The notes beneath the pieces were generated by a model. That model searched no databases and had not been told where the DNA came from. It saw nothing but the letters and a program-made list of their open reading frames with translations. Below are positions 49,961 through 60,655 of a stretch of 64,000 nt of DNA, in pieces. Both the position numbers and the translations under genes were made by a program. Within the stretch, counting starts at the first letter, position 1, and each line of letters starts with the position of its first letter. The stretch is from Hyphochytrium catenoides (Eukaryota > Protista > Hyphochytriomycota): the NCBI GenBank assembly GCA_900088475.1, contig FLMG01004137.1, positions 114,337 to 178,336 on the forward strand. The letters are read 5' to 3'.

Positions 49961-52900
49961 ATGCCATCACAAGTTCAAAGGCATCACGAGAGACCATCTA
50001 AGATGCGTCAAGAGGTGTGGGACGCTGTACGCTCTGCGCGGAGCGATATGAAACCGTCAGAGGCTGCTTTTCTCGCCTGTCAGCTTTGTATCCTAGTGCA
50101 ACCACCTCGTCCGAAGCCCTCGCACCAGAGTGATCAATTGACCTACACAGTCATTATGTATCGGCATCCTGCAGGCTTTCAGATGTATGTGCAAAAGCTA
50201 GAAAGCACCTGGGTGCGTGTAGGCTGCATCAATGGCCAGGACCAATTCCAAGGCCCTGCAGGGTTCTTTGGGAGTTTGGAGCAGGGGGACTATGTGCTGG
50301 CCATCAACGATGAGTCAGTCTTCAGCTTCTTGCCGTCGCTCCGGTTAAGTACTCTCGTCAAGAAGCTGACTGATGCTTCCCTCAACCCGATTAAGCTCAC
50401 AATGTTGCGGGGGCGACTGCTAGATAAGGCCATCTCGGGTTCCGCCGCCGACGCTGCTGAAAGCATTGATGATGAGGCCCTTGCTAACCTTCCTCGATAT
50501 GTGGTGAAAAGCCATTTAGCAGCGCAAAGACAGCTGACAATGCAGTCTTCCTACAGGCACTATGTATTGCCAGGTTTCGCTCGTCGACCTGGGATAAGAC
50601 GTAACGGAGTCCTTTTCAATGAGGAGGAGGGATCACCGCGGCAGTGGTTCGCAGAAGTTATTGACCTCAACGGGAGCGTCCGAGCCCTGGGGCCTTTTTT
50701 GGAAGAGTTTGATGCCGCTGCGGCCTTCGATGCGTATATAATTAGGCGCTACGGGTCTGAAGCTTCGGACTTGGTAAATGGCATGCCGCCCAAGAATGGG
50801 TCTGTCAGCGAGCGCGAAGATGAAGAGAAGGCTGATGGAAGAGACCCTAACTTGAAAGAAGGTAGCGTTCTGCATGCGTCCTTGCTTATATTAGCTTATC
50901 TCCGAGGCCAATCTAGTTAACTTGCAGGCACTTCTACTTCACCCCAAGGTGCCACTCCTATCCCGGTTCACGCTATTCCGGACTCAGACACTCCTGGCCC
51001 CTCAGAAGGAAAGGAGAAAGAACCCTTTCCCGTTGTAAATGTTGAAGAAGAAAGTGAAGGTCGAGAAGATGGTGCTGAAATTGCAGTCACTACAAAGCGC
51101 AACGTAAAGGAGGCTAGGAAATTGAATAGGGAGGAAAATGCGCATAGAAGCACAGGGGAAAAGAAGTTAGAGGTGTCAGGAAAGGGCACTCTCGTTAAAG
51201 TTGGCGAGGGAGGAGAGGAGACGGCCAAGGAAGGGAGGCAGCCCAAAAGCTCACCTGAAGTGGACCTCTTTCAGGACGTGACGGATCTGCAGGACCAAGT
51301 AGATTGGGAGGCTGATAGTGAGGGGAACAACAATGACGACGAAGACTTTGAAGGTGATTCTGAGGGAAGCAAGGAATATTCGGACGATAGCGAAGAGGGA
51401 TGGGAAGACGACAGTGAAGTTGACGAATATGTCCAGCTTCCTGCTTTCTCACAAAGAATGAAAGAGCAACTTCGAGCTCAAATACTTGCATTCAAGTACC
51501 TAGAAAAAGAGGCTACGGTTCCCCCCAAGGCCCTTTTAGCGGCTCTAGCGGGACCCTCAGATCAACCTCCTGGAACCGCAGATGGAGAGGCAGCAGAAGG
51601 CCAAATAGTGGAAAGCACTCAGCCTGTGTTACACAGTCAGCCTACCTTCGGCTCAAAAACAGGACAACAGCCCAAATCTAGGGCAGGCCCCAGTCATTTC
51701 AAGCCTAGACGGGTAAATCGCTTGGATGAATGGAGGGAAAACGATGCGGAATGGACTCCGCAAATCAGAAGAAGCAAGAGGAGAAAGATAGGGTGGAAGA
51801 AGAAAGTGGAATCTAGTGACTCCTCAATTCCTTCGGACTGGCTTGAGACAGAGGACGAAAGCGGAGGTAAATCTTCACGTAACGAAGGAAGCCGACAGCA
51901 AGGAGCAAGCTTGAAAAGGGCAAGAGGAAGATGGAGTGGCCAGCACACTACGTTTTCTAGAGTCCAGGGGATTCGGCGAAAGCGGCTCAGAAAGTCTGGA
52001 ACCGAAGATGAAGATGAAGGTATGTCAACCGAGACCCAAAGTGATGCGGAAGTCCCCTCGCCGCACCAGGGTCAGGTGCTGATAGACAAGTTTCTGGGCG
52101 TTCGTCATATGGCAGAGGACAACAGCAAGTCCAATGGTCGAGGTGAGTCCCTCTTTCTCGGAGGTAATAGGTAGAAAAGAAGGTGATAGCATGAATGCAA
52201 GAGAGACGTATGAAGAGGGACATCTAACGTTCGGCTGTTATTCCACCAGAGGAATACGAGTACTTAGTGAAGTGGAGGAACAAGTCGTACCGTCACATTG
52301 AGTGGATTGATGAGGACACACTGCGGCGTCAACCTCGCCATACTCAGGTATGAAGAATACCCAGAACTCTTGAATGGCCTCACAGCTATCATCTGTCCTA
52401 ACTAAAGCTTAGCTGCACTCTAGTAGATATTGTGCCCTACTACGGGCTTCTGAGGATTATCCATCACACTCCCTCCTTTGTTTCTTGACAGGATAATTCA
52501 GTTCCTAACCCTCCCTACTCTCACCCAGCGTATAAGAGATGCAGCATCTGAACAAACTTGACTTGCAGGCGCGAGCAAAGCGATACGTCAAGGCCAATCT
52601 CTCAATGTTGGATGAGAGTGACGTGGAGGCACGTCAGCTCTATAACCCTATGTATGTGGAAATCGACAGGATACTAGCTGAGCGAGAAGCGGAAGAGGAG
52701 GAGGATGAGGCGGTGGACCGAGAAGAAGAGGATGAGGTTTACATGGGAACTAAGCGGAAGAAGAGGCAGCCAAAGATAAGAAGAGGACTGCAGTACCTGA
52801 TCAAGTGGCGAGGTCTCTGCTACGGCGATATTACATGGGAATGGGAGGAAGAGGTGACAGACCCTACTAAACTGGACGAATACGAGCGCTTCAAAGTTCC

Positions 52901-58900: not shown

Positions 58901-60655
58901 ATTCAAACGATTTGGCTCACTCGATAGTCCTGTCCCTGACTCATCCTCAGACGTTCCCAGAAATTTACCAAAGTATGCCGGATCAGCTCCAGCCCTTAGC
59001 TCTCGAAGTCCAACCTCCTTTGGCCATGAAAACCCCAGCAAACGGCAGCCAAGTGGGAAGCAACCAACAGATGGCAATGCCCTAAGTCGCATTCTATCAT
59101 CTGACGAAGGGGCCGCTAGCGAGAAAGACTCGCCACAACCCCTAAGAGCTATAACCGAAGAGAAGCGAGGCTTAGACACCCAACCTATTCAGCAGGAAAA
59201 GCCTAGAATGGCCTTGAACCCAATGGAAGGGGAATCAGTCCAGACACCTAGAAAGCCGGAAAGTGGGACCTTAACGGAAGACACGGCATCATCCCCCTCA
59301 GACACGCTAAATTCTCCGTCCCAGAAAGCCAAGCTACGTTCAAAGGCCTCGGACTCTCTTGCTCTTCCAGTGCGCACGCCTTCTCGCAGCCCTGCCACAG
59401 GGAATCAGCTCGTCCATTCTCGACTTATCAGCCAAGAGCCAGTGGTCAGTACTTCGGGGTCGTTCCAGAGAGTTCCCTTTTCGCAGCGTCTTGACGATGC
59501 AGAAACGTGGAGCGATAACATTGATAATGGGTTGTCTGATGATGAAGGTGCTGGACATTTGAGCCTTAAGCGATACAATCCGAATGTTATGCCAGCAACC
59601 GTCACCGACGTCGATGGTAAGTGCCATGTAGGAGTTGGCAGGAGGGAAGCTGAGAATATATAGGACCTAGGGGAGTAGACAACCATGAGAATAGGCTAAA
59701 AAGTTATAAGTAACGTCAGAGGACAAGGGCGAAGGGAAGGTGATGAACCGAGAAGCATGGGAGGCGAACCCAGAGGACTGGGGCACAATTGGAGTACAAT
59801 AGAATGCTGTTCAAGAAAACTGCCCTTACCCGGGGACCAGCACCTAACGTTCGTGTCGGTTTGTTGCAGGTGCTGATGATATTTGGTGCTGTGTCTGCTA
59901 TAGCGGCAAAGTTTACGAAGGTGATGACATCGTCATTTGTGAGGGCTGCGACGTCGGAGTCCATCAGGTGCCCCTAGAGTGTCATATTGAATATCGCCAC
60001 CATCAAAATGCTAAACCGTTACGACAGGATTGTTACGGAGTGAAGGAGATTCCAGAAGGAGACAAGCCTTGGTTCTGTGATCTCTGTGCAGCCGGTATCC
60101 AAGAGTTCCCGGTACGTTGTTCAATACTCTGTCTAGAGGCTTCGCTGGTTTCTCGCACTGCTAGTTCCTTGGATTTGCCATTAAGTGTTCATCTGCAGCC
60201 ATGCAGGATCTGCAGGAAGGTAGTATTCTCTGCTATGAAGCCAGTCAAGGAGGGCGGTTGGGCCCACGCGGCCTGTGGTATATGGAACCCTGAGGTCAGC
60301 TTCCAGGTCCCACAGAAGATGGATGTGGTCATTGATGTGCCACGGATATCAAGGGATAGAAACAACCTTATCTGCATCTTTTGTCGCTCCAAGTATGGCT
60401 GCATACAGGTTAGTACAAGTCACAGGTATAATAATACGCTCTCTCTTTCTAATGCCCTGACCCCTGGTGGACACACAGTGTGCAAGATGCCCTCGAGCTT
60501 TTCATACAATCTGTGCACTGAACTCTTCACGTGCCTTGCTTATAATCAACGAAAGAGACGAACTGGAGCCATTTTGTTTCCAGCATCAAGGACACGCGAA
60601 GCCTAAAAAGTTTGAAGAGGAAGACACTGGGCAGGGAAGGGAGCACGCCAGTTAG
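49961..60655 (+). CDS. CHD6-9/CHD7-type chromatin remodeller: PDZ - AP2 - QLQ - 2x chromodomain - SNF2 ATPase/helicase - disordered region - PHD - ePHD
   Basis: Chromodomains [16 protein letters not shown] and [17 protein letters not shown]. ATPase motifs [66 protein letters not shown]...[16 protein letters not shown]...WFCDLC and ePHD CRIC...[13 protein letters not shown]...CIFC...[16 protein letters not shown]. Confidence 0.88.

Follow-up and report, generated by a model that had tools for sequence, protein, structure and literature searches.

A predicted CHD-family remodeller gene of Hyphochytrium catenoides that joins PDZ-like, divergent AP2, QLQ and PZP modules to one ATPase

Chromatin remodellers are usually guided by separate transcription factors or histone marks. 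A stretch of the intron-rich, diploid genome of Hyphochytrium catenoides (PMC5795050) raises the question of whether targeting can instead be built into the remodelling motor. The stretch, hereafter the window, is 64,000 nucleotides (nt) long and corresponds to positions 114,337 to 178,336 of contig FLMG01004137.1; positions are counted from its first letter. At 49961-60655 of the forward strand lies a predicted gene whose product is a CHD-family ATP-dependent nucleosome remodeller of 2,498 residues with intact ATPase motifs. The predicted chain carries four modules foreign to canonical CHDs: a PDZ-like domain, a divergent AP2 unit and a QLQ domain on the N-terminal side, and a PZP module of the Jade/BRPF/AF10 type at the C-terminus. 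The original prediction for this locus had held that AP2, QLQ and PHD+ePHD lie outside canonical CHD6-9, and all four modules are counted here as ones that canonical CHDs lack. Our overall explanation, to which we give a probability of roughly 0.7, is that this is one CHD-remodeller gene with four add-on modules, that its product would be recruited by histone-tail reading and protein docking, and that its AP2 unit would be atypical or regulatory.

The family assignment comes from the central part of the gene (Table 1). Domains were scanned exon by exon, and the chromodomains and SNF2 ATPase announced by the original prediction (Chromo twice, SNF2-rel_dom and Helicase_C) all scored above their Pfam cut-offs, which for Chromo is 25.1 bits. 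The ATPase motifs GLGKT, DEAQ and HRIGQ are present in the translation, and the ATPase exons match solved structures of ISWI/SNF2h, CHD1, CHD4 and related remodellers in the PDB. Downstream of the helicase, Pfam reported no BRK, SLIDE or SANT domain on the pieces scanned (56298-56515, 56575-56850, 56884-57030 and 57378-59660), in agreement with the earlier failure to recognise SANT/SLIDE or BRK there; the piece 56298-56515 has no PDB match, and an NCBIfam scan of three long exons returned nothing. The protein probably belongs to CHD subfamily III (the CHD6-9/Kismet type), an assignment that rests on the prevalence of this subfamily in stramenopiles, where it dominates with 167 of 175 CHD sequences (Trujillo et al., PMC9113485). 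Only one other locus matches the exon of chromodomain 2 (C4409:51345-54452, E 1.2e-5). The match falls inside a 748-residue open frame that may encode another chromodomain protein or a chromovirus-type retroelement.

Do the N-terminal units belong to the same chain as this motor? For the QLQ domain the answer is certain, because it shares exon 2 with the first half of chromodomain 1, which lies at the end of that exon. For the PDZ-like and AP2 units the answer turns on intron 1. The 22-exon model reads as a single frame free of internal stops across 21 introns, all of them GT-AG and 60 to 339 nt in size (median 109 nt; the short ones include introns of 60, 68 and 70 nt). Junctions had been proposed near 50861-50929 and 52143-52249, and GT-AG introns are indeed found at 50862-50927 and 52143-52249. 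The exon with the PDZ-like and AP2 units and the exon with the QLQ domain share one frame. The sole in-frame stop that separates them, a TAA at 50918-50920, lies inside intron 1, whose size is typical for the gene. Past this stop the frame is open for 179 codons (50921-51457), and only this frame is open: the other two contain 6 and 18 stops, and one of 20,000 shuffles was open (P ~5e-5). The acidic tract encoded here is open and has no ATG; it is therefore predicted to be coding and to depend on an upstream start, for which exon 1 is the adjacent candidate. The first in-frame ATG past the TAA, at 51458, falls within the QLQ domain beyond its conserved F-S-x-x start, so that initiation there would truncate the domain, and it is preceded by six out-of-frame ATGs with short open reading frames (ORFs).

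The competing view is that there are two genes, a 319-residue PDZ-AP2 protein stopping at the TAA at 50918 and a separate CHD gene downstream, or, as a variant, that both forms are made through retention of intron 1. The ORF 49961-50920 is complete by itself, from ATG to TAA; the donor of intron 1 is weak, GTAGCG deviating at positions +4 and +5 from the GTAAG-like consensus of the gene; and the fused arrangement was found in no relative. Two genes would, however, have no intergenic space between them, as the coding frame reopens one codon past the stop, and the downstream gene would have to start either in 179 codons that hold no ATG or at the ATG that damages the QLQ domain, behind six others that are out of frame. 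The frame is also preserved by either of two donors, the one at 50862 and an alternative at 50775 that would give an intron of 153 nt. We consider two genes improbable and a single gene at 49961-60655, joining the PDZ/AP2 exon to the CHD part, very probable on these sequence grounds, while a 319-residue PDZ-AP2 protein made by retention of intron 1 is possible as a minor isoform. The single polypeptide of the original prediction, with PDZ, AP2, QLQ, tandem chromodomains, SNF2 ATPase and PZP in one chain, fits the logic of a shared frame, a stop confined to a GT-AG intron and 179 codons without a start. A chimeric scaffold was ruled out, there being no runs of N within 49961-60655. A strong acceptor-like 'ctttcag' ends two bases upstream of the ATG at 49961 (49940-49961); it suggests an intron in the 5' untranslated region or, less likely, a further coding exon upstream.

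The PZP module and the QLQ domain both pass Pfam cut-offs (Table 1). The PHD and extended PHD (ePHD) predicted at the C-terminus were recovered as PHD_2 and zf-HC5HC2H_2. Among solved structures the middle PZP exon matches Jade-1 best (E 3e-11), followed by Jade-3, AF10, BRPF1 and NTO1 (E up to 6e-6). The QLQ domain, placed by the original prediction at ~51440-51550, was found on the same strand within that interval. In a genome-wide Pfam scan its locus scored 32.6 bits and was the sole QLQ locus reported. We do not call it the only QLQ domain of the genome, owing to a QLQ-like motif that can be seen by eye in the Gln-rich N-terminus of a BRM-type gene (contig C4216:48500-54500, minus strand, open frame 1-1986 of the segment), where the Pfam QLQ model is silent even at E 10. 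That gene has an HSA match of 51.7 bits, a SnAC match on the same contig and a run of N in its locus. Genome scans placed HSA on contigs C4216, C3053 and C1946 and SnAC on C4216, with neither at the CHD locus, and the Pfam results for the scanned exons of the CHD gene include no HSA, SnAC or bromodomain.

In the GRF-GIF pairs of plants a QLQ domain binds an SNH domain, and the SNH domain of SS18 also binds BRM/BRG1. The only Pfam SSXT/SNH match of the genome (33.1 bits) is found at C1845:12359-15523, with the SNH exon at ~1510-1680 of that segment. Just downstream on the same strand, at ~2187-2330, there is an AP2 unit (97% by hhalign against the AP2 profile). The sequence of the locus suggests a fusion of an SS18-like protein with AP2, which would be a natural candidate partner for the QLQ domain. 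A predicted complex between the QLQ segment of the CHD protein and the SNH exon of the SS18-like gene scored 0.14 against a mark of 0.34, which speaks neither for nor against binding.

The PDZ-like unit, which the original prediction had put at ~50140-50410, is present there on the plus strand and is backed by profile and guided-fold evidence while remaining below Pfam cut-offs. When 15 PDZ domains of the H. catenoides genome were combined into a profile, hhalign aligned it to the segment with a probability of 88.5% and a score of 33.9 over 82 columns, that is, over the whole domain. In 200 shuffles the same test gave 10.4±2.2 with a maximum of 17, so the real score stands about 10 standard deviations above them; other regions of the same protein scored 12.4 or less. 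ESM-Atlas features returned PDZ clusters at 0.91-0.93, with PDZ-type families in nine of the ten named clusters listed, although shared-feature counts of this size (~138) are also seen with distant or chance matches. The Atlas search with the whole of exon 1 gave nothing useful (0.76). An AlphaFold2 (AF2) model guided by a PDZ alignment, and so not independent of it, showed the PDZ order of strands and helices with a predicted local distance difference test (pLDDT) score of 82.8. When this model was compared with the PDB by Foldseek, all 50 matches listed were PDZ domains or PDZ-containing entries, with template modelling scores of 0.64-0.78. A phmmer search of the PDB with the unit gave sub-threshold matches to the PDZ domains of MAGI and X11 (E 0.3-1); designed armadillo repeats also appeared in that search and were set aside as spurious. 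The segment 50144-50410 is probably a PDZ domain.

The AP2 unit was first proposed at ~50580-50780 and is located at 50597-50782 on the plus strand. When exon 1 was compared by phmmer with a library of 1.84 billion representative proteins, 14 matches were returned, the strongest with E 1.9e-9, and every one of them fell on residues ~205-290. The best 13 of these 14 carry PF00847 above threshold, mostly in several copies, and the single unit of the query aligns to each AP2 repeat of the matched proteins. By hhalign, a profile of 29 related AP2 units that excluded the query matched the unit at 97.7% (E 2.4e-12). This E value is optimistic, as the 29 units were picked by similarity to the query, and the library-wide phmmer value is the independent figure. 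The profile of related units also matches the solved AP2/ERF domains of WRI1, TEM1, ERF096 and AtERF1, while a phmmer search of the PDB with the unit alone gave no AP2 match. On this comparison the predicted unit is a true AP2 homologue. It keeps the core pattern of AP2/ERF and protist AP2 domains (PF00847), G-V...W-A-E...L-G-F...D-A-A-x-A-x-D, but differs from them in falling below the Pfam model, in being acidic instead of basic, in an acidic hairpin insertion and in having no terminal LNFP motif.

Other AP2 sequences came to light around this unit. Its strongest single-unit matches (26 and 25 bits) are to a 288-residue HNH_3 endonuclease with two AP2 units, an AP2 protein of the homing-endonuclease type. 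In the 61-Mb genome the Pfam AP2 model passes its cut-off at a single locus (C3463:338260-338403, minus strand, 36.4 bits); the other AP2-like units of the genome, the one studied here included, are too divergent for that model.

Several findings weigh against the overall explanation. The Pfam AP2 model (gathering threshold 33.3 bits) gives no match to the unit, even when matches up to E 10 are admitted. The Pfam cut-offs for PDZ, PDZ_2 and PDZ_6 are not reached by the PDZ-like segment, for which PDZ_6 alone responds (E 0.069, 13.4 bits against a cut-off of 27), and the genome-wide Pfam scan, which reported 17 PDZ loci, did not pick up this segment. The guided PDZ model depended on an alignment of PDZ domains, and the single-sequence AF2 model of exon 1 is useless at pLDDT 33. 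To these points are added the weak donor of intron 1, the failure to find an orthologue with the same N-terminus in the protein collections searched, and the fact that the roles given to the PDZ-like, QLQ and AP2 units are ones that we infer. The silence of Pfam, the poor single-sequence model and the Atlas counts would suit a different view, in which exon 1 is a lineage-specific region that resembles PDZ, AP2 or both by chance and has no such folds. Against this stand an AP2 match of E 1.9e-9 among 1.84e9 proteins, with all 13 of the best 13 matches being AP2 proteins, and a PDZ profile score far outside its 200 shuffles on an alignment that spans the full domain. A chance resemblance is thus very improbable, and we retain the PDZ-like and AP2 homologies as parts of the overall explanation.

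Would the AP2 unit read DNA? If it were a functional sequence-specific DNA-binding domain, the protein would be the natural equivalent of the engineered Chd1-Ume6 fusion: a remodeller that targets itself and sets the positions of nucleosomes by reference to its own motif. The AP2 homology is solid, the profile of related units matches the DNA-bound structures of WRI1, TEM1, ERF096 and AtERF1, the conserved Trp and Glu and one Arg of the sheet are retained, and an engineered CHD with a sequence-specific DNA-binding domain operates in this way in vivo (PMC4864466). The character of the unit itself points the other way. Its net charge is -5 and its isoelectric point 4.4, and none of 39 related units is equally negative. 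Its DNA-facing beta-sheet has a net charge of -1, compared with +4.6±1.9 (minimum 0) in 51 AP2 units of the matched proteins. An acidic insertion, 'NEEEGS', lies in the beta1-beta2 hairpin, and the unit is followed by the 196-residue tract of net charge -33. The DNA-contact positions of AtERF1 we take, from the ERF1-GCC box structure of Allen et al. 1998, to be R150, R152, W154, Glu160, R162, R170 and W172. Through two chained alignments the residues at R150, R152, W154, R162, R170 and W172 are L, N, P, I/D, V and A, so that six of the seven positions are replaced and the Glu160 position alone is kept.

From these features we infer that the AP2 unit binds DNA weakly or atypically, if at all, its sheet being without the basic character of its relatives. 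Because the unit appears to have lost its basic DNA-binding face, sequence-specific self-targeting is a minority possibility and, in our judgement, unlikely. The original prediction of motif recognition, histone-tail reading and remodelling in one polypeptide therefore holds for the architecture, which fits a single chain, and is weakened for AP2-driven targeting by the acidity of the unit and its replaced contact positions. Somewhat less likely again is an all-in-one targeted remodeller, in which the AP2 unit reads a DNA motif despite its acidity, or once the acidic tract is displaced, while the PZP module reads the H3 tail and the QLQ domain docks the one SS18-like SNH protein of the genome, a protein with an AP2 unit of its own. 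If that were true, a CHD motor and not a BRM motor would be central to an SS18-linked, AP2-guided remodelling machine in hyphochytrids.

Table 1. Parts of the predicted CHD-family gene, with positions in the window
Feature	Position	Strand	Evidence or remark
Whole gene model	49961..60655	+	22 exons; coding sequence 7,497 nt; 2,498 residues (~279 kDa); ATG 49961, TAG 60653-60655
Exon 1 (residues 1-301; PDZ-like and AP2-like units)	49961..50861	+	Open frame 49949-50917
PDZ-like domain (residues 62-150), PAGF loop replacing GLGF	50144..50410	+	Profile alignment and alignment-guided AF2 model; Pfam sub-threshold
Divergent, acidic AP2 unit (residues 213-274)	50597..50782	+	phmmer to PF00847 proteins; hhalign
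Intron 1 (66 nt, GTAGCG...TTGCAG; predicted)	50862..50927	+	Read from sequence
Acidic low-complexity stretch, predicted coding, without start codon of its own	50928..51445	+	Net charge -33 over residues 275-470 (196 residues)
QLQ domain (residues 474-505)	51446..51541	+	Pfam PF08880, 28.9 bits against cut-off 23.8
Chromodomain 1, split by intron 2 (52143-52249)	52076..52347	+	Pfam Chromo 26.3 bits on exon 3
Chromodomain 2	52761..52889	+	Pfam Chromo 32.4 bits, E 8.9e-8
SNF2-type ATPase, ten exons (exons 5-14)	53095..56070	+	SNF2-rel_dom and Helicase_C pass on exons 6-14
Post-helicase region (exons 15-17), no named domain	56301..57014	+	No Pfam match on its open-frame pieces
Exon 18, 755-residue Ser/Pro-rich linker, probably disordered	57354..59616	+	Frame open for 769 codons; no Pfam or NCBIfam family
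PZP module (PHD, zinc knuckle, ePHD), four exons	59870..60652	+	PHD_2 31.7 bits, zf-HC5HC2H_2 42.1 bits, both above cut-off

Under the overall explanation the protein would slide or space nucleosomes as other CHDs do. It would be recruited to chromatin chiefly by its histone-tail readers, the PZP module on the N-terminal tail of H3 together with the chromodomains. The PDZ and QLQ domains would serve as docks for peptides and proteins and bring in partners or transcription factors, the former by binding C-terminal peptides and the latter by binding a partner in the way that the QLQ domain of GRF binds the SNH domain of GIF/SS18. The AP2 unit, lying beside the long acidic tract, may be a protein-contact or autoregulatory module. 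A natural CHD with its own AP2, PDZ and QLQ units and a PZP reader would show targeting wired into the motor in a little-studied stramenopile lineage, and would be the natural counterpart of the engineered, sequence-targeted Chd1. Should the AP2 unit prove not to bind DNA, it would be a clear example of an AP2 fold re-used for another role.

How widespread is this arrangement? Residues 1-200 of exon 1 have no relative among the 1.84e9 proteins, and no paralogue of exon 1 was found elsewhere in the genome. Exons 1 and 2 were each used in word searches, and neither found a relative among proteins of 0.55 to 1.75 times the query length, the range that such searches can see, which makes this a weak negative. 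The protein collections searched probably lack the published gene models, since the exhaustive search did not return the window's own product. The text of the CHD survey makes no mention of AP2, QLQ or PDZ (PMC9113485). In literature on AP2 with CHD, on QLQ with CHD and on oomycete Snf2 proteins the architecture is not described, which, as coverage was incomplete, argues only weakly for novelty. We regard the architecture as most likely real and, within the reach of these searches, as undescribed for a CHD. Elsewhere in the window, at 41674-44196 on the minus strand, there is an intronless ORF of 840 residues with a start that resembles a signal peptide.

With CHD subfamily III the protein shares tandem chromodomains placed directly before an SNF2 ATPase with intact motifs, and long, poorly structured flanks; it differs from that subfamily in the want of Pfam matches to BRK, SLIDE and SANT on the post-helicase pieces scanned, and in its extra N-terminal PDZ, AP2 and QLQ and C-terminal PZP. 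Its QLQ domain passes the same Pfam model (PF08880) as those of SNF2/BRM ATPases and plant GRFs, but sits in a CHD without the HSA, SnAC or bromodomain of the SNF2/BRM type. Its PZP module repeats the series of PHD, zinc knuckle and extended PHD of the Jade, BRPF and AF10 readers of the H3 tail; theirs are found in scaffolds of acetyltransferase or DOT1L complexes, whereas here the module stands at the end of an ATPase remodeller.

One parallel is man-made. The engineered Chd1-Ume6 hybrid positions nucleosomes onto the motif it recognises (McKnight et al. 2016, PMC4864466) and, like the H. catenoides protein, joins a CHD ATPase to a foreign domain of the DNA-binding type. In the hybrid that domain takes the place of the native DNA-binding domain at the C-terminus; the AP2 unit of the H. 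catenoides protein lies at the N-terminus, and its affinity for DNA is doubtful. A natural parallel exists in the oomycetes, the sister lineage of the hyphochytrids, where some class II histone deacetylases carry two AP2 domains beside a PHD domain (Wang et al. 2016, PMC5112689). Both systems join AP2 units to a chromatin enzyme and a PHD-type reader, although the oomycete enzyme is a deacetylase and not a remodeller and has neither PDZ nor QLQ. Because these deacetylases are already published, the fusion of AP2 to a chromatin enzyme has a precedent in this region of the tree. Together with the SS18-like/AP2 locus they indicate that AP2 units on chromatin proteins recur in the lineage, and, with the CHD gene described here, they suggest that pseudofungi have repeatedly attached AP2 units to their chromatin machinery.

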